Sequence record: NC_019411.1
DNA: 64,000 nt
Direction: 5' to 3' (one strand)
A program made the position numbers and the translations under genes. Positions within the stretch are counted from its first letter, which is position 1; every line of letters begins with the position of its first letter. Positions 45,889-53,202 of the stretch are shown here, piece after piece. The notes under the pieces were generated by a model. That model did not search any database, was not told where the DNA came from, and was given only the letters and a program-made list of their open reading frames with translations.

Positions 45889-46665
45889 ATGGCGATCCAG
45901 AACCCCCATTCCACCACGCCCGGCACCATGCCGCACCTGACGCCCGGCGAGATCGGCGTCAACAAGGCCGACGACATCCTCTGGTTCCGCTCGCAGGGGC
46001 GCCGCGTGCCAATCATCCTGAGCGATCTTGACCGCGCCCCGCCGGCGGACGGCTATGTCGGCGCTCCCCTGACTCTGGTCGACGGCGCGCCGGCCTGGAA
46101 TGTCAAGCTCTTGCCGTCCTCGATCGTCTCCGGCGCGGTCAAGGTCGATCTCCCGCCCGCCGCCGGCCTGCACGCCGTGCCGAGCGTCCTGCTCCAGGGC
46201 CTGGGGGCCGATCGCGTCCTGGCGACCAATGATCTGGACCTCACCCCCTTCTATGTCCGCTCCGACTCCATCACCCTGACCCATCTGGCCTTCAGCGTGC
46301 GCTCGGCCGGCGCGCCGGCCATGCGCGTGGGGATCGTCGACAGCTTCGGCGTCGTCCAGGCCGACATCCTGGTCGCCGCGCCGGTCGTGGGCGCCAATGT
46401 CGTGGCCCTCTCGCCGGTCCTGACCCTCCAGCGCGGCGTCTACCGCACCATCCTGGCGACGACCGGGGCGGTGACGGTGGGGATCGCCACCGGCGCGCGC
46501 ATGGAACAGGGCTGGGACATCATCGCCGACGCGCCGTCGTTTATCCGGGGCTACAGCGGTAGCAAGAACACTGGCGGCGGCATCGGGAGCCTGCCAGCGC
46601 TCACCCCGCGCCGCGACCCCGCGCCGGGCCAGGATCACGCCGTCCTCCTGCGCTGGACGGCGTGA
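45889..46665 (+). CDS. Fibre-tip-like protein, paralogous to the C-terminus of the giant protein
   Basis: ATG 45889; LTPGEIGVN motif and TPFYV...LQRGVY domain. Confidence 0.65.
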   Translation: MAIQNPHSTTPGTMPHLTPGEIGVNKADDILWFRSQGRRVPIILSDLDRAPPADGYVGAPLTLVDGAPAWNVKLLPSSIVSGAVKVDLPPAAGLHAVPSVLLQGLGADRVLATNDLDLTPFYVRSDSITLTHLAFSVRSAGAPAMRVGIVDSFGVVQADILVAAPVVGANVVALSPVLTLQRGVYRTILATTGAVTVGIATGARMEQGWDIIADAPSFIRGYSGSKNTGGGIGSLPALTPRRDPAPGQDHAVLLRWTA

Positions 46666-46727
46666 ATCTTGACACTCGGTCGAAATGCGGTTAACCTGCG
46701 CGCTCATCTGGAGTTTCGAGCGCCATC

Positions 46728-46994
46728 ATGGCCGAGCTTGTCCGCATCTATCACCCCGAGACGAACGAGCCGTTCGACGTGATCCCGTCGACCGCCGAAC
46801 GTCTGCGCCTGGGTCAAGGTCTGGACGGTCTGGTGTGGCTCTCGCAGCCCTTCTCCCGCGCCGCTGCCGAAGAGCCGGCGCCGGAAGCCCCCAAGGGGCG
46901 AGGTCGTAAGCGCGTCGCCGCGCCCGTCTCGGACGAAGCCGAAGACGATGGCTGGCGTGACGCGCCGACCGAGGACGCTTCCGAAGCCGCGTAA
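46728..46994 (+). CDS. Hypothetical acidic protein
   Basis: GGAG SD; KGRGRKR tail resembles 32592..32975. Confidence 0.7.
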   Translation: MAELVRIYHPETNEPFDVIPSTAERLRLGQGLDGLVWLSQPFSRAAAEEPAPEAPKGRGRKRVAAPVSDEAEDDGWRDAPTEDASEAA

Positions 46995-47038
46995 GGCGCT
47001 TCCCCGTCCACTCTGCTGAAATTCGGTCTCAGTCCCAT

Positions 47039-47114
47039 GTCGGTCTAGCTCATGGGGTAGAGCGGCGGTCTCCAAAACCGCGCGTGGCAGGTTCGAGTCC
47101 TGCGACCGGCGCCA
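47039..47114 (+). tRNA. trnW: tRNA-Trp (CCA)
   Basis: Cloverleaf, loop CTCCAAA, TTCGA T-loop, CCA end. Confidence 0.9.
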
Positions 47115-47119
47115 TTTCC

Positions 47120-47194
47120 GCGTCCATCGTATATGGGTTATTGCTTCGCGTTGCCAACGCGACGAACCGGGTTCGAGTCCCGGTGGACGCTCCA
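47120..47194 (+). tRNA. trnG: tRNA-Gly (GCC)
   Basis: Loop TTGCCAA, CCA end. Confidence 0.9.
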
Positions 47195-47200
47195 ATCCAG

Positions 47201-47274
47201 GCGGATATAGCTCAAAGGGAGAGCTACTGCCTTCCAAGCAGAAGATGCGGGTTCGAGCCCCGCTATCCGCTCCA
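47201..47274 (+). tRNA. trnG: tRNA-Gly (TCC)
   Basis: Loop CTTCCAA, CCA end. Confidence 0.9.
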
Positions 47275-47295
47275 AAATTTTCTTCCACGACAAGC

Positions 47296-47324
47296 TTGAC
47301 AGCCGCCGAGATTTGTGAGAGCCT
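47296..47324 (+). promoter_or_regulatory. Sigma70-type promoter of the Glu/Asp tRNA unit
   Basis: TTGACA-N17-GAGCCT; shares TTGTGAGAGCCT with the 48092 promoter. Confidence 0.6.
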
Positions 47325-47333
47325 TCAACCATT

Positions 47334-47396
47334 ATGACGCACCTCCTGACCCGTTACGAACGCGAGGCCACCGGCCTCGATACCACCACCGCCTAA
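47334..47396 (+). CDS. Putative leader peptide MTHLLTRYEREATGLDTTTA
   Basis: ATG near the predicted +1; stop lies inside a hairpin followed by TTTT (47373-47423). Confidence 0.5.
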   Translation: MTHLLTRYEREATGLDTTTA

Positions 47397-47430
47397 AAGC
47401 GGTTCTGGTAACCGAGGCCTTTTGTCATGT

Positions 47431-47508
47431 GGCCCGGTCGTCTAGCGGTTTGCAGGATTCGTGACTTTCAATCACGAGAGCGGAGTTCGAGTCTCCGTCG
47501 GGCCTCCA
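47431..47508 (+). tRNA. trnE: tRNA-Glu (TTC)
   Basis: Loop CTTTCAA, CCA end. Confidence 0.9.
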
Positions 47509-47531
47509 CCCCCAAAGCCTCCTCTGAGCTT

Positions 47532-47606
47532 GGTGCGTTCGTATATCGGTCAATACTCCGGATTGTCGATCCGGCAAGAGGGGTTCGATTCCCCTACGCA
47601 CCGCCA
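47532..47606 (+). tRNA. trnD: tRNA-Asp (GTC)
   Basis: Loop TTGTCGA, CCA end. Confidence 0.9.
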
Positions 47607-47617
47607 GGGCTTTCCCA

Positions 47618-47776
47618 ATGCCGCTTCAGTCGGGTTCGAGCGACGCCGTCGTCTCGCACAACATCGCCAAGCTGATCGACGAGGGCTACTCCAGGGAGCA
47701 GGCCGTGGCGATCGCTCTCTCCCAGGCGCGCAAGCCGCGCCGTCCGAAGGTCTCGCGCGGCTCGCGCCGGCGCTGA
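47618..47776 (+). CDS. Small basic phage protein (MPL..GSS..VVS.NI..LI.EGY...[10 protein letters not shown] type)
   Basis: Hand-translated 52 aa; recognisable small phage family. Confidence 0.7.
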
Positions 47777-47846
47777 CCTCGCCTCGCTAAAGCACCCCAG
47801 GTTCCCGGCCTCGTCGTGAGGCCGCCTGCGGTCGCGCGAGGCTTCC

Positions 47847-48071
47847 ATGACCTTTCTTGATCTTCGTTCGCAGTCGAGCACCGCGCTCCTGCGCCATGTG
47901 TCTTCCCGATCCCCGATGGCGGAAGCGGCTCGCACCGAGTTGCTGACCCGAGGCCTCGTCCCGCTCCTCACGCGGCACAACGGCTGGCGCCTCGCCCCGA
48001 GCGAGCCCTTTCCGCAGCATCTCATCCCGCGCCCCGATCCGCTCGCGAGGTTCACGTGGCGGGCGGGATGA
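47847..48071 (+). CDS. Hypothetical protein
   Basis: GAGG SD, 74 aa. Confidence 0.5.
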   Translation: MTFLDLRSQSSTALLRHVSSRSPMAEAARTELLTRGLVPLLTRHNGWRLAPSEPFPQHLIPRPDPLARFTWRAG

Positions 48072-48091
48072 AGATTTTTCTCACGCCGTGC

Positions 48092-48120
48092 TTGACATCC
48101 GTCTGAAGTTGTGAGAGCCT
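48092..48120 (+). promoter_or_regulatory. Sigma70-type promoter of the P/T/K/L/H/A/S tRNA operon
   Basis: TTGACA-N17-GAGCCT. Confidence 0.65.
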
Positions 48121-48214
48121 GTCCAACGTCACGGATCACGACACTCCTCGGAGTGCAAAAGCGCGATCCTTCGTTATTCCCTGGACGCCAGCGGGCGTCC
48201 GTTCGAGAGCCATC

Positions 48215-48352
48215 ATGTTCGCCTTGTCGCATAACAGCCTGAGCACGAAAGCCGCCTCCCCGGCGTCGCTTTCGCTTGCCCTGCTGGCGACGGCCACGAA
48301 GCCCTCGACCAAGCCGACCACCTCGGCCTCGCACTCGACGGATCACCTCTAA
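48215..48352 (+). CDS. Attenuator leader peptide MFALSHNSLSTKAASPASLSLALLATATKPSTKPTTSASHSTDHL
   Basis: 41 of 45 residues are P, T, K, L, H, A or S, the amino acids of the 14 downstream tRNAs. Confidence 0.8.
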   Translation: MFALSHNSLSTKAASPASLSLALLATATKPSTKPTTSASHSTDHL

Positions 48353-48417
48353 GGTATCTCGTCTCGGGTGCAGGCCTTGGAGCCGCACCCGCTACCAACA
48401 TCCTGTTGACCTAGCGC

Positions 48418-48454
48418 AAGGCGGCTCCCAGCAAGGAGACCGCCTTTTCTTTTT
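48418..48454 (+). terminator. Attenuator terminator ahead of tRNA-Pro
   Basis: AAGGCGG-CTCC / GGAG-A-CCGCCTT followed by TTCTTTTT. Confidence 0.85.
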
Positions 48455-48466
48455 CGCGTTGATCAT

Positions 48467-48542
48467 CGGGGTGTAGCTCAGTCGGTAGAGCGCTCGGTTC
48501 GGGACCGAGAGGCCGTGGGTTCGAGTCCCGCCACCCAGACCA
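48467..48542 (+). tRNA. trnP: tRNA-Pro (CGG)
   Basis: Loop TTCGGGA; G2-A71 mismatch; CCA end. Confidence 0.85.
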
Positions 48543-48549
48543 ACGCCAT

Positions 48550-48624
48550 CGGGATGTAGCTCAGCGGTAGAGCGCGCGGCTGGGGGCCGCGAGGCCGCAG
48601 GTTCGAGACCTGCCACCCCGACCA
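48550..48624 (+). tRNA. trnP: tRNA-Pro (GGG)
   Basis: Loop CTGGGGG; CCA end. Confidence 0.85.
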
Positions 48625-48629
48625 ACAAT

Positions 48630-48702
48630 GCTGCTGCGCCTGGATCGGCGCCGGCCCCTTGGTATGGGGAAGTAGAAGGTTCAATTCCTTCCGGCAGCAC
48701 CA
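48630..48702 (+). tRNA. Atypical tRNA-Thr (GGT)
   Basis: GCTGCTG/CGGCAGC acceptor with G1-C72 and C2-G71; CCCC-TTGGTAT-GGGG arm; compact D region; ACC codons in the leader. Confidence 0.6.
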
Positions 48703-48707
48703 ACAAC

Positions 48708-48777
48708 GCCGATGCCTCTAGGAGGACACGTCTTTCGTAATGACGTCAGGTGGGTGCGATCCCCACTTTCGGCTCCA
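48708..48777 (+). tRNA. Atypical tRNA-Thr (CGT)
   Basis: 70 nt; loop TTCGTAA; T-loop TGCGATC; very short D arm; ACG codons in the leader. Confidence 0.55.
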
Positions 48778-48812
48778 TCAAGATGATCAAGGAGAGATCA
48801 GACGAAACAAAT

Positions 48813-48899
48813 GGATGTGTCACCTCAGTGGCGAGAGGACCGGGCTCTTAATCCGGCAGCGAAAGCTCATCGTGGGTTCGAGTCCCACCACATCCTCCA
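48813..48899 (+). tRNA. trnK: tRNA-Lys (CTT) with long variable arm
   Basis: Loop CTCTTAA; variable arm AGC-GAAA-GCT; 87 nt. Confidence 0.85.
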
Positions 48900-48906
48900 A
48901 CAATAT

Positions 48907-48996
48907 GCACGAGTGACCCGAGCGGCGAAGGGCGTCGACTTTTAATCGACTGGGCGTCCAGCCTCACCGAGGGTTCGAGTCCCTCCTCGTGCTCCA
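48907..48996 (+). tRNA. trnK: tRNA-Lys (TTT) with long variable arm
   Basis: Loop CTTTTAA; variable arm GGGC-GTCCA-GCCT; 90 nt. Confidence 0.85.
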
Positions 48997-49002
48997 AGAT
49001 GT

Positions 49003-49088
49003 GCGAAAGTGGCGGAACAAGGTAGACGCACCGGTCTCAGGTACCGGCGGCTTCGGTCATGAGGGTTCGAGTCCCTCCTTTCGTACCA
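49003..49088 (+). tRNA. trnL: tRNA-Leu (CAG)
   Basis: Class II fold, loop CTCAGGT. Confidence 0.9.
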
Positions 49089-49095
49089 ACGACAT

Positions 49096-49180
49096 GCCGG
49101 TCTGGCGGAAATGGCAGACGCAGTGGCTTCAAGTCCCACCGCCTTCGGGCGTCCCGGTTCGATGCCGGGGACCGGCACCA
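49096..49180 (+). tRNA. trnL: tRNA-Leu (CAA)
   Basis: Class II fold, loop TTCAAGT. Confidence 0.9.
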
Positions 49181-49186
49181 CCATGA

Positions 49187-49274
49187 TGCGAAGTGGCGGA
49201 ATTTGGTAGACGCACCGGCATGAGAGGCCGGCGCCCTTCGGGGCGTGAGGGTTCGAGTCCCTTCTTCGCGACCA
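49187..49274 (+). tRNA. trnL: tRNA-Leu (GAG)
   Basis: Class II fold, loop ATGAGAG. Confidence 0.85.
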
Positions 49275-49287
49275 AAGACGAGATTAT

Positions 49288-49359
49288 GCCGGCCGGCGCA
49301 GGCGCGCGGGGGAGGTTGTGTCCCTCCTTGGCTCAGTTCGATACTGAGGGTCGGTTCCA
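49288..49359 (+). tRNA. Atypical tRNA-His (GTG)
   Basis: GCCGGCC/GGTCGGT acceptor; GGAGG-TTGTGTC-CCTCC arm; CTCAG-TTCGATA-CTGAG T-arm; poor D arm; CAT/CAC codons in the leader. Confidence 0.55.
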
Positions 49360-49364
49360 GTTAC

Positions 49365-49435
49365 GGGGTATGCGCAGGGCGCAGGCATCCTTTGCAAGGA
49401 AGTCGGGGTGGGTTCGAGTCCCACATACTCCACCA
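49365..49435 (+). tRNA. Atypical tRNA-Ala (TGC)
   Basis: G3-U70 and A73 Ala identity elements; loop TTTGCAA; short D arm. Confidence 0.65.
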
Positions 49436-49439
49436 ACAC

Positions 49440-49527
49440 GGTAGGTTGGCTGAGAGGCCGAAGGCGCCCGTTTCGAAAACGGGAGAACCGCAAGGTTCCG
49501 TGGGTTCGAATCCCACACCTACCTCCA
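49440..49527 (+). tRNA. trnS: tRNA-Ser (CGA)
   Basis: Class II fold, loop TTCGAAA. Confidence 0.9.
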
Positions 49528-49531
49528 ACAT

Positions 49532-49619
49532 GGATGTATGGCTGAGAGGCCGAAGGCGCCCGCTTGGAAAGCGGGTGAACCGCAAGGTTCCGTAGGTTCG
49601 AATCCTACTGCATCCGCCA
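49532..49619 (+). tRNA. trnS: tRNA-Ser (GGA)
   Basis: Class II fold, loop TTGGAAA. Confidence 0.9.
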
Positions 49620-49623
49620 ACAT

Positions 49624-49710
49624 GGTAGGTGGTTCCGGCCTGGGGCCGGACCCGGTTGCTAACCGGCCGGAGCCGCAAGGCTTGGGGTTCGATTCCTCCT
49701 CCTACCGCCA
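49624..49710 (+). tRNA. trnS: tRNA-Ser (GCT), probable 8/4 fold with extended D stem
   Basis: Loop TTGCTAA; GGTAGGTG/CTCCTACC acceptor; GGGG/CCTC T stem; TCCGGC/GCCGGA D stem. Confidence 0.8.
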
Positions 49711-49750
49711 ACATCTCCCAGGCCTATAGCCTGGGAGGGTTTGGACATAA

Positions 49751-50239
49751 TCAGGCGTGGTTCGGAAACTCGGCGATCTCAATCCCAGGCGAGGCGCTGA
49801 CGACCAACCAGTAAGCTCCGGTCCAGCGCAAGACAACCGCAGGCGGATAGGCCGGGGCCAAGGGGGTGAGCACGGATGCCGGATCGGCGACGATAGAATC
49901 GGGCAACGGAACGATCAAGGCTGGACCGGTTTTCGCCGCCGCAGGATCACCATAACCGGAAGCGAAGACGGGGGTCTGAACGCCAGCGTCAGCCAATATG
50001 CCGAGGATAATAGGCATAGCTAAGGGCGCACTCTGCGGAGCATGTGTCCCACGAGAGAATGTGATGAAAAGTTCGTCTCCTACTTCCTTCGCGGCAGTAA
50101 GGAATCCATATCTTGCGGCATAGTCGGCTGCTCCGAATTCAGGAGAGACTTGGCTTACGAGATGGACGCGCTGCTCTCCGTTCGGGTTGACGATTTGAAT
50201 CGAAGCCTCAATACCTCGGTTCATCGTGATTGCGGTCAT
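49751..50239 (-). CDS. Hypothetical protein inserted antisense in the tRNA array
   Basis: 162 aa; GGAG SD; lower GC3 than its neighbours. Confidence 0.65.
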   Translation of the reverse strand: MTAITMNRGIEASIQIVNPNGEQRVHLVSQVSPEFGAADYAARYGFLTAAKEVGDELFITFSRGTHAPQSAPLAMPIILGILADAGVQTPVFASGYGDPAAAKTGPALIVPLPDSIVADPASVLTPLAPAYPPAVVLRWTGAYWLVVSASPGIEIAEFPNHA

Positions 50240-50313
50240 AAGTATCTCCAGCGGCTGGATGCCGCAGTGCGATACCTAAAGTCGAGTTTTCGACGTGTCC
50301 AGCCCCTTTGAAG

Positions 50314-50560
50314 TTGACACCCGCGACGCGGCCTGTCATACGTCACGACAGAGCGAACACCCCCCGGCCGGGTTTGTTGTCATACCGGGTCGTCACGCCC
50401 CGTCGGGGCTCTAGTAGCTCTTCGTGTGGAGTTTTCCGCCTCCCTCCCAGACAAGGAGGCGGACCCAACCAACATCGCGATCTCCCGTGATCGTCGGCGA
50501 CGGGCGCCGTCAGAGACCTTTGCCTGCGCGGCTCCGCTGCGGCCCTGGTCTCGTCCCGAC
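50314..50560 (+). ncRNA. Candidate structured ncRNA unit
   Basis: TTGACA promoter at 50314, several hairpins, no ATG ORF, CCA-like ends at 50471 and 50560. Confidence 0.35.
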
Positions 50561-50581
50561 CAAATTTTTTCGTCGTGGTGC

Positions 50582-50610
50582 TTGACACTGCGAAACTGTT
50601 CTGCTAGGGT
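50582..50610 (+). promoter_or_regulatory. Sigma70-type promoter of the Y/F/V/I/Q/N/R tRNA operon (leaderless mRNA)
   Basis: TTGACA-N17-TAGGGT (GCTAGGGT); leader ATG at the predicted +1 (50618). Confidence 0.7.
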
Positions 50611-50617
50611 TCACGTC

Positions 50618-50716
50618 ATGAGCAAGACCTATCGTCAATTTGTGCGCCAGATTCAGGTCGTCCGGAATATCCGGGCGGGCCGCTCGCGCATGGCTGACGA
50701 AGGGTTCAGGGACTAG
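50618..50716 (+). CDS. Attenuator leader peptide MSKTYRQFVRQIQVVRNIRAGRSRMADEGFRD
   Basis: Codons 5-19 are exclusively Y, R, Q, F, V, I, N, the amino acids of the 12 downstream tRNAs. Confidence 0.8.
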   Translation: MSKTYRQFVRQIQVVRNIRAGRSRMADEGFRD

Positions 50717-50746
50717 GTCCCACACCACGCTCAACCAGCTTTCGAG

Positions 50747-50783
50747 AGGCCCGCCTGGAAACCCCAGGCGGGCCTTTTCTTTT
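50747..50783 (+). terminator. Attenuator terminator ahead of tRNA-Tyr
   Basis: AGGCCCGCCTGG/CCAGGCGGGCCT followed by TTTCTTTT. Confidence 0.9.
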
Positions 50784-50816
50784 CCACTTTCGATCACGGA
50801 GATCACCAACAGACAC

Positions 50817-50901
50817 GGATGCTTAAAGCTGGAGGGCTCCAGCCGGGGACTGTAAATCCCCTCTCTTCGGAGGAGTGGTTCGATCCCACAAGCATCCACC
50901 A
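50817..50901 (+). tRNA. trnY: tRNA-Tyr (GTA), probable 8/4 fold with 6-bp D stem
   Basis: GGATGCTT/AAGCATCC acceptor; GTGG/CCAC T stem; GCTGGA/TCCAGC D stem; loop CTGTAAA. Confidence 0.8.
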
Positions 50902-50906
50902 ACCAC

Positions 50907-50982
50907 GGACTCGTAGCTCAGCAGGTAGAGCGCCGGCTTGAAACCCCGGAGGTCGGAGGTTCGATTCCTCCCGTTTCCACCA
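50907..50982 (+). tRNA. trnF: tRNA-Phe (GAA)
   Basis: Loop TTGAAAC; two acceptor mismatches. Confidence 0.85.
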
Positions 50983-50987
50983 ACAAC

Positions 50988-51063
50988 GCCCGATGAGCCA
51001 GATGGGAAGGCGCCGCCGTGACATGGCGGGATTGAGAAGGTTCGATTCCTTCATCAGGCACCA
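50988..51063 (+). tRNA. trnV: tRNA-Val (GAC)
   Basis: Loop GTGACAT. Confidence 0.85.
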
Positions 51064-51065
51064 AT

Positions 51066-51141
51066 GCAAGTGTAGCTCAGTCGGTAGAGCAGCGGACCGA
51101 TAATCCGCCTGTCCCTGGTTCGAGTCCAGGCATTTGCACCA
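51066..51141 (+). tRNA. trnI: tRNA-Ile (GAT), C33 variant
   Basis: Loop CCGATAA. Confidence 0.85.
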
Positions 51142-51148
51142 ATTCTGA

Positions 51149-51223
51149 TGTGGCATAGCTCAGGGGTAGAGCGCGCGCTTGATAAGCGTGAGGTCGGGGG
51201 TTCGAAGCCCTCTGCCACTACCA
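51149..51223 (+). tRNA. trnI: tRNA-Ile (GAT)
   Basis: Loop TTGATAA; U1-U72 mismatch. Confidence 0.85.
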
Positions 51224-51256
51224 GTTTCCAGGCCGGCGGAGATGCGCCGAACCTGA

Positions 51257-51332
51257 TGGCGTTTAGCATAGTGGGAGTGCAGGGGTGTCACATACCTCGA
51301 TCGAACTGGTTCGATTCCAGTAACGCCAACCA
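51257..51332 (+). tRNA. trnV: tRNA-Val (CAC)
   Basis: Loop GTCACAT. Confidence 0.85.
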
Positions 51333-51337
51333 AATGT

Positions 51338-51411
51338 TGAGGGTTCGTCTAACGGTAGGACGGCTGGGTCTGGTCCAGCTAATCTAGGTTCGAGTCCTAG
51401 CCCCTCATCCA
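51338..51411 (+). tRNA. trnQ: tRNA-Gln (CTG)
   Basis: Loop GTCTGGT. Confidence 0.85.
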
Positions 51412-51418
51412 AGTTTGT

Positions 51419-51492
51419 TCTCGGGTGGTCTAATGGTAAGACATCTGGTTTTGGTCCAGAGGATTGGGGTTCGATTCCTTGGCCGAGAACCA
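51419..51492 (+). tRNA. trnQ: tRNA-Gln (TTG)
   Basis: Loop TTTTGGT. Confidence 0.85.
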
Positions 51493-51507
51493 ACTACTTG
51501 AGTTTAT

Positions 51508-51582
51508 TCCAGTCAATGCACAAGGTGTGCAGCGGCACTGTTAATGCCTGTGAGCCCGGTTCGATTCCGGGGTCTGGAGCCA
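51508..51582 (+). tRNA. trnN: tRNA-Asn (GTT)
   Basis: Loop CTGTTAA. Confidence 0.85.
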
Positions 51583-51608
51583 ACACGCCGGCCTCGGCCG
51601 GCACATGC

Positions 51609-51691
51609 GCCCTGGTAACCGAGGGGGATTACGAATCCCTTAGTCGTAGCAGGAGTTGAAAAGGGTGGTTCGAATCCACTCCAGGGTGCCA
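51609..51691 (+). tRNA. D-armless tRNA-like RNA, anticodon ACG (Arg)
   Basis: GCCCTGG/CCAGGGT acceptor; GGGA-TTACGAA-TCCC arm; about 24-nt extra region; canonical T-arm; CCA end. Confidence 0.5.
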
Positions 51692-51698
51692 AATTCAT

Positions 51699-51781
51699 AG
51701 CGCGCAGGCCGAGCAGGATCATCGTCAGGCGTCGCCCTCCGAAGGCGAAGAGGCCCGGTTCGAGTCCGGGGCGCGCTGCCA
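51699..51781 (+). tRNA. trnR: tRNA-Arg (CCG) with enlarged D loop
   Basis: Loop CTCCGAA; 17-nt D loop. Confidence 0.8.
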
Positions 51782-51784
51782 TCC

Positions 51785-51862
51785 GCGCGGGTAGCTCAAT
51801 GGACCCAGAGCAGCCGTCTTCTACACGGTGGGTTGGGGGTTCGAGTCCCTCCCCGCGCGCCA
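51785..51862 (+). tRNA. trnR: tRNA-Arg (TCT)
   Basis: Loop CTTCTAC. Confidence 0.9.
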
Positions 51863-51865
51863 AAC

Positions 51866-52200
51866 TTGACGGGCGATGTCGAATCGCCCAGGATCAAACC
51901 GTAGGCCTCTTCCCGTGGGCCTGACATATACGTCCGCCAGCACTGCCATTCCGCGTCAGCGGGCGCGGCGCGAGGAGGGTTAACCCCTCGTTGTCGTGCA
52001 GCCGGGTGGTGTGGACGTCCCAACGTGATCTTCGAACGCGGCATGCCGTGGAGGGGTGATCGGATGGCGAACCAAGGGACACCTTCTTATCCTGGCCTGG
52101 GCCGCATGGGGCTCCGCTGGGAGAAACGGCCTGACCCGACCGGAGGTGCGTCCAGGATGCCGGCTCTCCATGCCAGAGTCTCGTGGACTAGGGTCTGAAA
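51866..52200 (+). ncRNA. Candidate structured ncRNA at the end of the tRNA operon
   Basis: About 330 nt with several hairpins, a long-range GGCATG/CATGCC stem and no convincing ORF. Confidence 0.35.
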
Positions 52201-52219
52201 TTTTTCTGGCGCTGATGTG

Positions 52220-52351
52220 TTGACACTCCTCGGAGGCTCGTCTAAAACCAGCAGCGTCAGAGCGGCGTTGGACCACGAGGTCCGCCGCGAGCTTCTGCGT
52301 TGTCGTCAGGAACGGCCCGCCAGCAATCCCGCTGGCGGGTCGTTTCGTTTT
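52220..52351 (+). ncRNA. Candidate ~95-nt sRNA (promoter, hairpin, terminator)
   Basis: TTGACA-N17-TAAAAC; GCGGC..GGACC/GGTCC..GCCGC hairpin; terminator AACGGCCCGCCAGC/GCTGGCGGGTCGTT followed by TCGTTTT. Confidence 0.45.
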
Positions 52352-52471
52352 GGGCGCAATGCGACGTTCAGTCCAACCATGGGTAGTGTCATGAATCTTG
52401 ACTTTCGGCGCTTATTCCGGTAGCTTTCCCGACATCAGCAAACGCTCACAAGTCGGGGACCGAGAGCCGTC

Positions 52472-52888
52472 ATGTCGCAAGACCACAACGGCTCGTCCTC
52501 GGGCCAAGAACGCATCTACCAGAAACTGGATGAGCTTGGCTCCATGCACGCGCGCACCCGTGAAGATATTGCCCGCATCCAGGAGATGATGCGAGCGGTC
52601 GGTTCGTCGCAGGAGCGGATCGAAAAGCGCCAGGACCATTTCGAGCGCGAAATCTGGCGTGAGATGGAAGACCGCGCCGCGCGCACGAGCGCCCAACTCG
52701 ACGAGATCAAGAGCCACACCAACCTGCGCATCGAGGAGATCGAGGCCAAGGTCGACACGATCCGCGAGGAACGGATCGCCGAGAAGGCCCAGTGGCGCGG
52801 CCCCGAGAAGGCCATCGCCGCCCTGGTCGCCGTCGCCGGGGCCATCGCCGCCTTCGCCACGATCCTCACTTTCCTGAAGGGACACTAG
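52472..52888 (+). CDS. Coiled-coil protein with C-terminal membrane anchor (holin-like/XhlA-like topology)
   Basis: Heptad-rich body; AIAALVAVAGAIAAFATILTFL tail; function not established. Confidence 0.6.
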   Translation: MSQDHNGSSSGQERIYQKLDELGSMHARTREDIARIQEMMRAVGSSQERIEKRQDHFEREIWREMEDRAARTSAQLDEIKSHTNLRIEEIEAKVDTIREERIAEKAQWRGPEKAIAALVAVAGAIAAFATILTFLKGH

Positions 52889-52995
52889 GACTTATAGTCA
52901 AGCTTGGGTGCCTGCGGCCAGAAGTCGCGCTTCTTGACACCCGATCTGGGCCGGCATAACCATAGGGCCATCGTTCCTGGGTGGAGTTTTCCCTA

Positions 52996-53202
52996 ATGGC
53001 TGTCGCGCTTACTGTCGTCTCGGTTGAGACCGAATCTACCATCCAAGGTGTTGATCCCGACGCGGCGCATGTCCGCCTGATCGAGGTCCTGCATACCGCC
53101 GCAGAAGCGGGTCTTGGGGAAATGACGTTGGAAGTCAAAGCGGAGATCGCGGCGCTGCTCCAGCAGGCGTCCGTGGAACTCTCCCACTGCCGGCCGGTGT
53201 AG
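52996..53202 (+). CDS. Hypothetical protein
   Basis: GGAG SD. Confidence 0.55.
   Translation: MAVALTVVSVETESTIQGVDPDAAHVRLIEVLHTAAEAGLGEMTLEVKAEIAALLQQASVELSHCRPV

Follow-up and report, generated by a model that had tools for sequence, protein, structure and literature searches.

The window analysed here is bases 1–64000 (64 kb) of the Caulobacter phage CcrSwift and is identical to JX100809, with the same coordinates. It carries 31 tRNA or tRNA-like genes in four blocks, ordered W,G,G / E,D / P,P,T,T,K,K,L,L,L,H,A,S,S,S / Y,F,V,I,I,V,Q,Q,N,R,R,R. This is the layout and gene order given in an earlier note on this DNA, except that its range began at 47296 and missed block 1, which starts at 47039. 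Default ARAGORN called 24 of the genes, with concordant Rfam tRNA matches, and relaxed settings added 5 more (Thr-GGT, His-GTG, Ser-GCT and two Arg). Cloverleaf folds were obtained for Thr-CGT (48708–48780), which is 86% identical to the Thr-CGT called by ARAGORN in Rogue, and for Tyr-GTA (50817–50901). The first Arg gene of block 4 is non-canonical, its anticodon being ACG, or CCT according to ARAGORN. The gene at 51508–51582 was labelled Ile-AAT by ARAGORN. We rejected this label: the loop reads CUGUUAA and the syntenic counterparts are Asn-GTT, so that the gene is most likely a tRNA-Asn. Block 1 lies directly 3' of gp077 and has no leader of its own.

Blocks 2, 3 and 4 are each preceded by a TTGACA hexamer, a short ORF and a hairpin, hereafter the E/D, P and Y units (Table 1). 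The earlier note had described all three as promoter, short ORF and hairpin with a U-tract; the elements are there for each block, the U-tract of the E/D unit being weak. GenBank annotates one terminator per unit, while a simple consensus scan for promoters and terminators flagged none of those of the three units. The E/D and P units have in common the motif CTTGACA-N13-GTGAGAG, found twice in the window against 0.32 matches expected by chance. In the leader units, the stop codon always lies inside a hairpin loop. An Rfam search of the region returned no match to a leader family or to a T-box.

Table 1. Coordinates of the tRNA blocks and leader elements in the CcrSwift window
Feature	Position	Strand	Description	Source or annotation
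Block 1	47039–47274	+	tRNA-Trp(CCA), Gly(GCC), Gly(TCC)	ARAGORN, GenBank features
E/D -35 hexamer	47296–47301	+	TTGACA	
E/D leader ORF	47334–47396	+	MTHLLTRYEREATGLDTTTA, then stop	No GenBank annotation
E/D hairpin	47373–47419	+	Hairpin, then UUUUGUC; covarying pairs	GenBank terminator (47373–47419)
Block 2	47431–47606	+	tRNA-Glu(TTC), Asp(GTC)	ARAGORN
P -35 hexamer	48092–48097	+	TTGACA	
P leader ORF	48215–48352	+	MFALSHNSLSTKAASPASLSLALLATATKPSTKPTTSASHSTDHL, then stop	gp079, phrog_12742
P hairpin S1:S2	48325–48376	+		Minimum-energy fold
P segment S3	48379–48391	+	GGAGCCGCACCCG	Folding
P intrinsic terminator	48419–48456	+	10-bp stem, then UUUCUUUUU	GenBank (48420–48444), folding
Block 3	48467–49710	+	Pro(CGG), Pro(GGG), Thr(GGT), Thr(CGT), Lys(CTT), Lys(TTT), Leu(CAG), Leu(CAA), Leu(GAG), His(GTG), Ala(TGC), Ser(CGA), Ser(GGA), Ser(GCT)	ARAGORN default and relaxed, cloverleaf folding
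Y promoter	50582–50610	+	TTGACA (50582–50587), 17-nt spacer, TAGGGT	
Y leader ORF	50618–50716	+	MSKTYRQFVRQIQVVRNIRAGRSRMADEGFRD, then stop; sensor run YRQFVRQIQVVRNIR	Unannotated
Y segment A	50656–50666	+	GGUCGUCCGGA, final sensor codons; pairs with B	
Y segment B	50670–50681	+	UCCGGGCGGGCC, codons 18–22; pairs with A or C	
Y stop-codon hairpin	50709–50721	+	GGGAC-UAG-GUCCC, stop in loop	
Y intrinsic terminator	50744–50789	+	C (50744–50758), D (50764–50778), U-tract	GenBank (50748–50774)
Block 4	50817–51862	+	Tyr(GTA), Phe(GAA), Val(GAC), Ile(GAT) x2, Val(CAC), Gln(CTG), Gln(TTG), Asn(GTT), Arg(ACG), Arg(CCG), Arg(TCT)	ARAGORN default and relaxed, cloverleaf folding

We compared the composition of the P and Y leaders with windows drawn from the CDS-like ORFs of the 64-kb window. 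In the P leader, 41 of 44 residues belong to the amino-acid set of its own block (P/T/K/L/H/A/S; background 0.44). Its longest own-set run is 35 residues, against 13 for the longest background run in 11,238 codons, and its own-set count was equalled by 0 of 100,000 random windows. All 14 anticodons of the P block have a cognate codon in the leader (P = 3e-4). The Y leader has 19 of 31 residues in its set (Y/F/V/I/Q/N/R; background 0.30), a count equalled by 68 of 100,000 random windows (P = 6.8e-4); its longest own-set run is 15, that of the background 9, and 11 of 11 Y-block anticodons find a cognate leader codon (0/100,000 windows). When amino acids were partitioned at random, 4 of 10^6 partitions matched as well as the Swift leaders. 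As the earlier note had stated, the P and Y sensors have no amino-acid type in common. Its claim that the leader codons are cognate to the anticodons of the block stands at the level of amino acids and is not supported at that of the own anticodons: on synonymous resampling, the match beyond what peptide and codon usage give was not significant in Swift (P = 0.19 and 0.12) or in eight other leaders.

The leader pattern is kept in 13 Dolichocephalovirinae phages from at least five groups and in a metagenomic contig. Alternative residue states in the Y sensor stay within the set in 14 of 15 cases, against 8 of 30 in the tail of the same ORF, and leader indels are in-frame only. In CcrSC and CcrBL9, tRNA-Trp is located in the P block and W is present in the P leader. 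The Erythrobacter phage XM05 has three leaders for three blocks, with a partition unlike that of Swift: 55 of its 74 leader residues fall in the set of their own block, each of the 20 amino-acid types is present in the leader of its own block, and no match this good arose in 2x10^6 random partitions. Similarly, 57 of 72 leader residues are in-set in the Erythrobacter phage vB_EliS-L02 and 35 of 39 in the Sphingobium phage Lacusarx (0 of 5x10^5 partitions as good in each); in Lacusarx, no leader is evident for the first tRNA block. Both the conservation of the leaders across the 13 phages and their match to the differing partitions of the three others favour the core reading of the earlier note. 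Two further features were seen in the Erythrobacter phages. In XM05, two blocks have a strong terminator after their first tRNA, which a simple attenuation model leaves unexplained, and an RNA-splicing ligase gene adjoins the tRNA arrays of both vB_EliS-L02 and XM05.

In the Y unit, the mRNA is probably leaderless, because the ATG of the leader lies only 7 nt past the -10 hexamer. The TTGAC-to-ATG distance is fixed in the 13 phages except for one additional base in CcrSC and CcrBL9. Leaderless mRNAs are efficiently translated by the Caulobacter host (PMC4117421). Alignment of the relatives showed that the A:B helix is paired in 90% of cells, with 3 pairs changed on both sides. The 12-bp antiterminator B:C is 96.2% paired with 4 compensated pairs, while versions shifted by 1–3 columns pair at no more than 54%, and the terminator helix C:D is 95.4% paired with 3 compensated pairs. 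The stop-codon hairpin is paired in 62% of cells, again with 3 pairs changed on both sides. When transcripts ending before D were folded, B:C formed unless the A-site was at about codons 16–26. When the Swift Y leader was folded at full length, the equilibrium structure contained the terminator whatever the ribosome position, so that the model for this unit relies on the kinetics of co-transcriptional folding. In most relatives, the Y terminator is followed by a second mini-ORF that has a strong Shine-Dalgarno sequence.

In the P unit, TTGACA and the leader ORF are separated by a 5' UTR of about 115 nt that is conserved. The product of this ORF is listed as a hypothetical protein, and its PHROG has no known function. 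The last codons of this ORF pair with the sequence past the stop codon to form S1:S2, with the stop codon in the apical loop. S3 is free in the fold while this hairpin stands, and can pair either with S2 (CGGGUGC) or with the 5' arm of the terminator, GCGGCUCC, the latter pairing being an antiterminator. The apical stem of S1:S2 covaries among relatives. S3 is invariant across 7 relatives and offers no covariation signal; with the S1–S5 region invariant in close relatives, the relay described below is a prediction from folding. The modelled probability of the Swift P terminator is mostly 0.0–0.3 with the A-site at codons 1–34 (0.6 at the start codon) and 0.9–1.0 from codon 35. The modelled terminators of BL57 and Rogue likewise turn on at codon 35, and that of Bambus one codon earlier, at 34. 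No canonical terminator follows the P leader in Colossus, PW and CcrSC.

The E/D leader contains just three E/D codons. Its core, RE.E..G.DT, is kept in most of the 13 phages, and the Bertelyviruses CcrSC and CcrBL9 retain one E and one D only. Its long hairpin spans the final codons of the ORF, with the stop codon at the apex, and is melted by a modelled ribosome from about codon 12 on. The U-tract, weak in Swift, is short there and in phiCbK, while the other genera have almost none, and across these phages it does not support a canonical attenuator. The E/D unit may work differently from the P and Y units.

We favour the explanation, to which we give a probability of roughly 0.7, that the P block (48092–49710) and the Y block (50582–51862) are separate transcription units, each under ribosome-mediated transcription attenuation. 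Host RNA polymerase would initiate at the TTGACA promoter of either unit, and a ribosome would translate the short leader, whose sensor stretch uses only the seven amino acids of the downstream tRNAs. In the Y unit, slow decoding would hold the ribosome on codons 5 to ~14, B would pair with the terminator 5' arm C, no terminator would form and the tRNA block would be transcribed. With fast decoding, the ribosome would cover B as C and D emerge, C:D would form and transcription would stop. The P unit would act as a relay: with the ribosome upstream, S1:S2 would stand and S3 block the terminator arm, and a ribosome at the final ~ten codons would melt S1, so that S2 captures S3 and the terminator forms. 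In the folding of both units, a stalled ribosome gave read-through and a finished one termination; in vivo, termination would be controlled by ribosome position. The net effect would be negative feedback, with phage tRNA synthesis rising if decoding capacity is short and falling if it is sufficient. The leaders would be translated, and the signal would be decoding capacity for the amino acids of the block. The central idea of the earlier note, that leader translation sets read-through into the matching tRNA block, is well supported at the sequence level for the P and Y units, but canonical attenuation is not supported for the E/D unit. The further suggestions of the note, that the blocks may be transcribed only when needed and may be linked to host tRNA-cleaving defences, are inferences.

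A more specialised possibility, which we consider unlikely though the best placed of the alternatives, is a counter-defence switch that is off in a healthy host and induced specifically by anticodon nucleases or other tRNA-depleting defences. The stall-to-read-through logic is compatible with it, as are the tRNA-repair genes (the ligases of XM05 and vB_EliS-L02) and the tRNA set of vB_EliS-L02, 29 tRNAs of 20 unique kinds (PMC9127768). However, with 7–8 amino acids covered by each sensor, and all 20 covered in XM05, the design resembles a general sensing of capacity, whereas a nuclease would hit one or a few anticodons. Ordinary decay of host tRNAs late in infection would also give the same signal.

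Classical attenuators such as the trp and his leaders answer to charged tRNA, whatever lowers its level. The same hardware could then report starvation for a group of amino acids, that is tRNA charging and not tRNA abundance or damage, and the leader match at the amino-acid and not the isoacceptor level agrees with this. We regard this as rather improbable: extra tRNA is no remedy for starvation, such induction conflicts with the stringent control of stable RNA, and regulated products that are themselves tRNAs better fit feedback on tRNA supply, although the sequence alone gives the same expectation for the two signals.

It is less probable again that leader translation does not control termination and instead shields the tRNA precursor from Rho or RNases, times its processing, or provides positive coupling, so that tRNA synthesis would require ongoing translation. 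Under such a role one could accommodate the P units of Colossus, PW and CcrSC and most E/D units, which have no canonical terminator, the invariable position of the stop codon in a hairpin loop, and the mini-ORF past the Y terminator of most relatives; a ribosome melting the E/D hairpin would give positive coupling. Yet the strong Y terminator and its covarying in-ORF antiterminator would be needless for protection or processing alone, and the restriction of the sensor to the amino acids of the block would be left unexplained. That the ORFs are ordinary small proteins or untranslated, with a composition match arising by coincidence or as a by-product of RNA structure, is already very unlikely: gp079 is hypothetical with a PHROG of unknown function, and small ORFs beside tRNAs in phage Moby and a Leu-rich ORF in vB_EliS-L02 have no such match, so that tRNA-adjacent ORFs can be unrelated to tRNAs, but equal matches are as rare as given above in Swift and absent from at least 5x10^5 partitions in three other phages, in-set substitutions are confined to the sensor part of the ORF, indels are in frame and leaders follow differing partitions in differing lineages.

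Attenuation by leader translation, as favoured here, has close parallels in the trp, his, leu, thr and ilvGMEDA attenuators of enterobacteria, which likewise have a promoter-proximal short ORF rich in regulatory codons and exclusive terminator and antiterminator helices between which ribosome position decides. Segments A, B, C and D of the Y unit correspond to 1, 2, 3 and 4 of the trp scheme, and sensing of more than one amino acid is likewise a property of the thr and ilv leaders. However, those attenuators regulate biosynthetic enzymes and the phage units tRNAs; the phage leaders cover 7–8 amino acids each (all 20 together in XM05), and the units are viral with a probably leaderless mRNA. 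In the pheST attenuator of E. coli, the read-out depends on the cognate tRNA. There, with the pheM leader, and in Caulobacter, where a leader peptide lies upstream of trpS (PMC4117421), leader translation also controls a component of the translation machinery, but this is the aminoacyl-tRNA synthetase of one amino acid and not a block of 12–14 tRNA genes. T-box riboswitches similarly tie the state of a specific tRNA to terminator read-through before translation-related genes; they bind uncharged tRNA directly and need no ribosome or ORF, whereas the phage units have a coding leader.

Phage tRNA arrays have been discussed as compensation or counter-defence, and for CbK-like phages the idea has been raised that their tRNAs offset the loss of the host's translation machinery as it is degraded in late infection (PMC9127768). 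The cargo is the same here, a large tRNA set near PhoH with repair genes nearby in relatives. In that literature, the tRNAs are cargo, whereas we propose a feedback sensor over their transcription. In agreement with the earlier note, our literature search found no previous description of a leader-peptide feedback sensor or attenuator controlling phage tRNA transcription. If the proposal is true, the phage makes these tRNAs when ribosomes decode their amino acids slowly.

The sequence of the window is identical to that of CcrSwift JX100809 (Shapirovirus, Dolichocephalovirinae), with the same coordinates. Default ARAGORN finds 24 tRNA genes within 47039-51862, in agreement with the Rfam tRNA model; at a relaxed threshold the program also calls Thr-GGT, His, Ser-GCT and two Arg genes. 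Two further genes are recovered as cloverleaf folds, Tyr-GTA (50817-50901) and Thr-CGT (48708-48780), the latter with 86% identity to the Thr-CGT called by ARAGORN in phage Rogue. The gene at 51508-51582 is named Ile-AAT by ARAGORN, yet it has the loop CUGUUAA and occupies the position of Asn-GTT in the relatives. A non-canonical tRNA-like gene lacking a normal D arm lies at 51609-51691; its loop (CUACGAA-type, UUACGAA in Swift) shows ACG in a covarying stem-loop, while relaxed ARAGORN prefers CCT. Taken together, ARAGORN, Rfam and the cloverleaf folds confirmed the block order proposed in the earlier note: W,G,G / E,D / P,P,T,T,K,K,L,L,L,H,A,S,S,S / Y,F,V,I,I,V,Q,Q,N,R,R,R. The GenBank record omits eight of the tRNA or tRNA-like genes, several of them non-canonical: Thr x2, His, Ser-GCT, Tyr, Asn and Arg x2. 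Both tRNA-Lys genes measure 87-90 nt and carry a long extra arm, an unusual form for a Lys tRNA. Swift has a 162-aa ORF on the minus strand (phrog_28405, no Pfam match) between the P and Y blocks (the 14 genes from Pro on and the 12 from Tyr on). The gap at this site is about 600 nt shorter in phiCbK, so the ORF is probably an insertion.

Blocks 2, 3 and 4 had been described as each starting with a TTGACA promoter, a short ORF (hereafter the leader) and a hairpin with a U-tract. All three are indeed preceded by TTGACA, a short ORF and a terminator hairpin annotated in GenBank, but the U-tract of the E/D unit is weak in Swift and weak or absent in relatives. All three units escaped a simple promoter and terminator consensus scan of the window, owing to poor -10 boxes and to stems that extend into the U-tract; they were delimited by direct reading, GenBank TransTermHP features and folding. 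The P leader, gp079, is the only leader ORF annotated in GenBank, and its PHROG is of unknown function. Across the 13 Dolichocephalovirinae phages compared, the ATG start is kept in 13/13 Y and 13/13 E/D leaders, and the P leader starts with ATG in Caulobacter phages and GTG in Brevundimonas phages. The position of the stop is conserved and indels within the leader ORFs are all multiples of three, i.e. in frame.

The distance from TTGACA to the ATG is fixed in the 13 Y leaders, save for one additional base in CcrSC and CcrBL9. In the Erythrobacter phages XM05 and vB_EliS-L02 and the Sphingobium phage Lacusarx, a near-consensus -10 box ends exactly 7 nt 5' of the ATG. Given both spacings, these mRNAs are probably leaderless, and in Caulobacter the translation efficiency of leaderless mRNAs equals that of leadered ones (PMC4117421). 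In the E/D and Y units a few bases at most separate the predicted transcription start from the leader, whereas the P leader follows a conserved 5' UTR of about 115 nt that contains hairpins of its own. In all three leaders the stop codon sits in a hairpin loop and the last sense codons form the 5' arm; these hairpins carry compensatory changes in relatives, and the same layout is seen in XM05 and Lacusarx leaders. Most relatives also have a second mini-ORF directly 3' of the Y terminator, with a strong Shine-Dalgarno sequence (AGGAGAT), a short spacer and an ATG, encoding MNNGG*, MTGGD* or MTGG*; in Swift and phiCbK this ORF is degenerate. The mini-ORF might serve as a second checkpoint or bring ribosomes onto read-through transcripts. 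Another TTGACA and a conserved structured stretch (e.g. hairpin GCCUCCCUCCCAGACAAGGAGGCGGA) lie upstream of the Y promoter; the stretch could represent a decayed tRNA or a small RNA.

Coordinates and properties of the leader units and associated features. Positions are those of the window unless a related locus (L number) is named; own set, the amino acids of the tRNA block downstream; helix values are cells paired and pairs changed on both sides in the 13-phage alignment.
Feature	Position	Details
TTGACA, E/D unit	47296	
TTGACA, P unit	48092	
TTGACA, Y unit	50582	
E/D leader ORF	47334-47396	
P leader ORF (gp079)	48215-48352	41/44 residues in own set (background frequency 0.44); longest own-set run 35 (background maximum 13)
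Y leader ORF	50618-50716	19/31 residues in own set (background frequency 0.30); longest own-set run 15, YRQFVRQIQVVRNIR (background maximum 9)
Intrinsic terminator, P unit	48419-48456	
Intrinsic terminator, Y unit	50744-50789	
Y helix A:B (apex of long hairpin)		90%; 3 pairs
Y helix B:C (antiterminator, 12 bp)		96.2%; 4 compensated pairs
Y helix C:D (terminator)		95%; 3 pairs
Stop-codon hairpins	47373-47419, 48325-48376, 50709-50721	
P leader 5' UTR	48098-48214	
Structured stretch upstream of Y promoter	50315-50580	further TTGACA at 50315
Degenerate mini-ORF, Swift	50790-50816	
Mini-ORF between Y terminator and tRNA-Tyr, relatives		L003, L004, L005, L006, L015, L008, L013, L021 (metagenomic contig)
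Genes missing from GenBank	48630-48780, 49284-49360, 49624-49710, 50817-50901, 51508-51781	
tRNA-Lys genes	48813-48899, 48907-48996	
162-aa ORF	49751-50239 (- strand)	
tRNA-Trp shift and P leader, CcrSC and CcrBL9	L009 6582-6701, 8170-8242; L014 6516-6635, 8113-8186	
XM05 leader MRFVVAFMNNPAPAIMVPAVEARVGDGGTAF		Pro, Pro, Met, Val, Ile, Asn, Val, Ala; 19/30 own-set residues
XM05 leader MTYGFTKRDRREGDERGFTS		Lys, Lys, Gly, Gly, Asp, Glu, Glu, Arg, Arg, Phe, Arg; 14/19 own-set residues
XM05 leader MFTQTALHLLTQTPLYCQWQYSCSSL		Ser, Tyr, Leu x3, Thr, His, Gln x2, Ser, Cys, Trp; 22/25 own-set residues

We compared the P and Y leaders with a background of 11,238 codons from CDS-like ORFs within the window, using 100,000 random windows. 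No random window equalled the own-set count of the P leader (0/100,000), and 68/100,000 equalled that of the Y leader (P = 6.8e-4). The sensors, i.e. the leader stretches drawn from the block's own amino-acid set, share no amino acid between the P and Y units, as the earlier note had stated. When the 18 amino acids supplied by the tRNAs were randomly assigned to blocks, 4/10^6 assignments matched as well, conditional on both peptides. The leader codons had also been proposed to be cognate to the block's own anticodons. Such codons are present for 14 of the 14 P-block anticodons (P = 3e-4) and 11 of the 11 Y-block anticodons (0/100,000 windows), but not beyond what peptide and codon usage give. 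Sensing at the anticodon level is therefore unproven, as synonymous-codon resampling gave P = 0.19 and 0.12 in Swift and 0.3-1.0 for eight leaders of other phages. No match to the leaders was obtained in Rfam or Pfam.

Conservation of the leaders in relatives, a point on which the proposal depended, held: 13 phages share the composition pattern. All three leaders, and the division into four blocks, are found again in Shapirovirus, Poindextervirus, Colossusvirus and Bertelyvirus as well as in four Brevundimonas phages (Gurke, Kikimora, Bajun and Bambus), and IMG/VR yielded a single new contig, metagenomic and viral, with a Y-type leader and block. P leaders consist of 84-95% P/T/K/L/H/A/S in every phage despite strong sequence divergence, and Y leaders have an in-set run of 14-15 residues in all phages but CcrBL9 (run of 9). 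Among 11 distinct Y leaders, 14 of the 15 alternative residue states in sensor columns 5-18 fall within Y/F/V/I/Q/N/R, while the tail of the same ORFs, serving as an internal control, has 8/30 in the set, which is the background rate. This difference supports selection on composition. A three-codon insertion in Ccr10 adds in-set residues only.

The block partition is almost constant within Dolichocephalovirinae, the one change concerning tRNA-Trp. In CcrSC and CcrBL9 this gene lies at the end of the P block, a Trp codon is found in the P leader, and block 1 is Gly, Thr. This covariation in Bertelyvirus is only suggestive, since only one event is involved and the Bambus tail contains W as well. 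More distant phages with different partitions allowed the leader content to be compared with the tRNA set as the earlier note had suggested, and random-partition tests indicated that the leaders track the partition in all three of them. In XM05, 20/20 amino-acid types are found in the leader of the block holding their tRNA, and none of 2x10^6 random partitions equalled its total of 55/74 own-set residues. The corresponding values are 57/72 for vB_EliS-L02 and 35/39 for Lacusarx, each with 0/5x10^5 matching partitions; in the Lacusarx leader MFTQTTLLTQCHYWQLLSSSSL, 20/21 residues belong to its own set. The tail of the first XM05 leader, GDGGTAF*, resembles that of the CbK-type (Dolichocephalovirinae) Y leader, DGGT.I*, so that this seems to be a homologous leader whose sensor was altered as the block content altered. 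Small ORFs beside the tRNAs of Stenotrophomonas phage Moby, used as a negative control, had no composition match, and the first Lacusarx tRNA block has no evident leader. A Leu-rich ORF 5' of tRNA-Leu(UAA) in vB_EliS-L02 was rejected, as its CTN codons are non-cognate and its product resembles a membrane peptide.

Two XM05 blocks have a strong intrinsic terminator after their first tRNA (L022 1-2120, L023 1-4300, both XM05 loci), which the simple model leaves unexplained. The same phage has an alpha-type two-piece tmRNA downstream of the tRNA array, and about 97 nt repeated at both ends of the record, including a tRNA-like gene (Arg-TCT according to relaxed ARAGORN). Leaders of S/Y/L/T/H/Q/C/W blocks (L022 and the related loci L024 and L025) show a greater variety of synonymous codons than their peptide and the codon usage of the phage predict (P = 0.001, 0.0007 and 0.04); among the leaders resampled, unusually many different codons occur only in S/L/T/Q-type leaders. 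These leaders may sample many isoacceptors rather than the phage's own alone.

We then considered whether the RNA can switch; all structural conclusions were drawn from thermodynamic folding and alignment counts. The Swift Y leader transcript folds at -84.1 kcal/mol (z = -6.2 vs shuffles) into a long hairpin with helix A:B at its apex, a small hairpin whose loop contains the stop codon, and the 15-bp terminator C:D followed by a U-tract. The last sensor codons make up segment A (GGUCGUCCGGA), and codons 18-22 segment B (UCCGGGCGGGCC). As B is a near-copy of D, it is able to pair with C. The arms of B:C are about 70 nt apart, and their pairing drops to 54% or less when slid by 1-3 columns. In CcrSC, B, C and D are altered in concert (UCGGACGGGCC / GGCCCGUCCGA / UCGGACGGGCC), and in Colossus a U-A replaces a G·U pair in B:C. 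In transcripts ending just before D, a shortening that mimics co-transcriptional folding, B:C has a probability of 0.7-1.0 unless the modelled A-site is at about codons 16-26 (9/9 phages). Full-length transcripts at equilibrium switch clearly in Bajun and CcrSC only, where the terminator is at 0-0.2 with the A-site at codons 4-14 and at 0.8-1.0 beyond; brief terminator dips occur in the Y units of Rogue, Gurke and Bambus. The full-length Swift Y leader at equilibrium forms the terminator at every ribosome position, with no switch. Its stable terminator always wins at equilibrium, so the Swift model depends on co-transcriptional order.

In the P unit, folding predicts that S1 (the last ORF codons, from 48325) pairs with S2 (post-stop, to 48376) with the stop codon in the loop. 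With S1:S2 formed, S3 (GGAGCCGC) pairs with the 5' arm of the terminator (GCGGCUCC). Masking of a ribosome footprint in silico frees S2, which captures S3 and lets the terminator form. Accordingly, the modelled terminator probability in Swift is mostly 0.0-0.3 (0.6 at the start codon) while the A-site is at codons 1-34 and rises to 0.9-1.0 from codon 35; the same step is found in BL57, Rogue and Bambus, with higher and more variable upstream values. On this modelling, a stall anywhere in the sensor run would give read-through and completion of the ORF would give termination, and the P and Y units would switch with the same sign. Segments S1-S5 are invariant in seven relatives beside a variable sensor part, which fits a functional switch, the S3:S4 pairing being a folding prediction. 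Compensatory changes in the P unit occur only in the apical stem around the stop codon and in the small hairpin between S3 and S4. No canonical terminator was found 3' of the P leader in Colossus, PW and CcrSC.

The E/D unit is not counted as a demonstrated attenuator. Its leader ORF is conserved (core RE.E..G.DT) but has only two Glu codons and one Asp codon in Swift. The 3' end of the ORF forms a covarying hairpin with the stop codon at its apex; behind it, Swift and phiCbK have a short U-tract (UUUUGUC), which is nearly missing from the other genera. A modelled ribosome from about codon 12 onward melts this hairpin, so that translation would favour read-through, a logic unlike that of the P and Y units. 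XM05, vB_EliS-L02 and Lacusarx have homologues of this leader that are full K/G/D/E/R/F sensors, so the CbK-type E/D leader looks like a reduced form of such a sensor.

The best-supported reading is ribosome-mediated attenuation, which would exert negative feedback on decoding capacity for two groups of seven amino acids. The units combine a recurrent architecture, a composition match that is conserved and covaries with the blocks, and alternative helices. On this reading the leaders would be translated, termination would be controlled in vivo, and the signal could be the abundance or integrity of tRNA, e.g. during late-infection decay of host tRNA or nuclease attack. More broadly, we put at roughly 0.6 the probability that large phages of Alphaproteobacteria (the Caulobacter and Brevundimonas Dolichocephalovirinae, XM05, vB_EliS-L02 and Lacusarx) control their own tRNA complement through multi-amino-acid leader-peptide attenuators. 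Each block would be transcribed in proportion to how slowly its amino acids are decoded, and the three XM05 leaders would jointly monitor all 20. Alternatively, tRNA charging could be what is sensed; that the product is the tRNA itself makes feedback on supply the more plausible of the two. The units may possibly have a counter-defence role. We give low weight to a protective or processing role of leader translation, and likewise to a coincidental composition match.

Ribosome-mediated attenuation of this kind would work by the same mechanism as the trp, his, thr and ilv leaders and pheST. The Y unit has the four-segment logic of the trp attenuator, and the Swift model needs co-transcriptional order, as trp does. 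Classical leader attenuators regulate genes for amino-acid biosynthesis or synthetases, whereas the phage units precede 14 and 12 tRNA genes. Cmscan of 46000-53000 (E <= 1) gave no match to the Rfam leader families (His_leader, Leu_leader, Thr_leader, Trp_leader and others) or to the T-box, but only tRNA and tRNA-Sec hits and weak chance matches to unrelated families. The earlier note knew of no description of leader-peptide attenuation of phage tRNA operons, and for phage tRNA arrays we found neither leaders nor attenuation mentioned in the searchable full text, a scope outside which most subscription journals lie. The genome papers of phiCbK (PMC3556154) and vB_EliS-L02 (PMC9127768) mention neither.

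That the leader's amino-acid set equals that of the downstream block is a simple rule, statistically overwhelming and found in several phage genera, and it can be searched for in all phage genomes. The usual view of phage tRNA genes is that of passive cargo, there to tune codon usage or to make up for lost host tRNAs. If the leaders are attenuators, the phage gauges decoding speed for each amino-acid group and adjusts tRNA synthesis accordingly. It would constitute the first case of tRNA genes controlled by attenuation, and a homeostat of translational capacity encoded by a virus; it would extend a textbook mechanism to stable RNA genes, with far more amino acids per sensor than in any known leader. 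The leaders would be compact natural sensors of translational capacity, reusable as reporters. They would also offer a handle on when and why phages express tRNAs, including under host defences that cleave tRNA.
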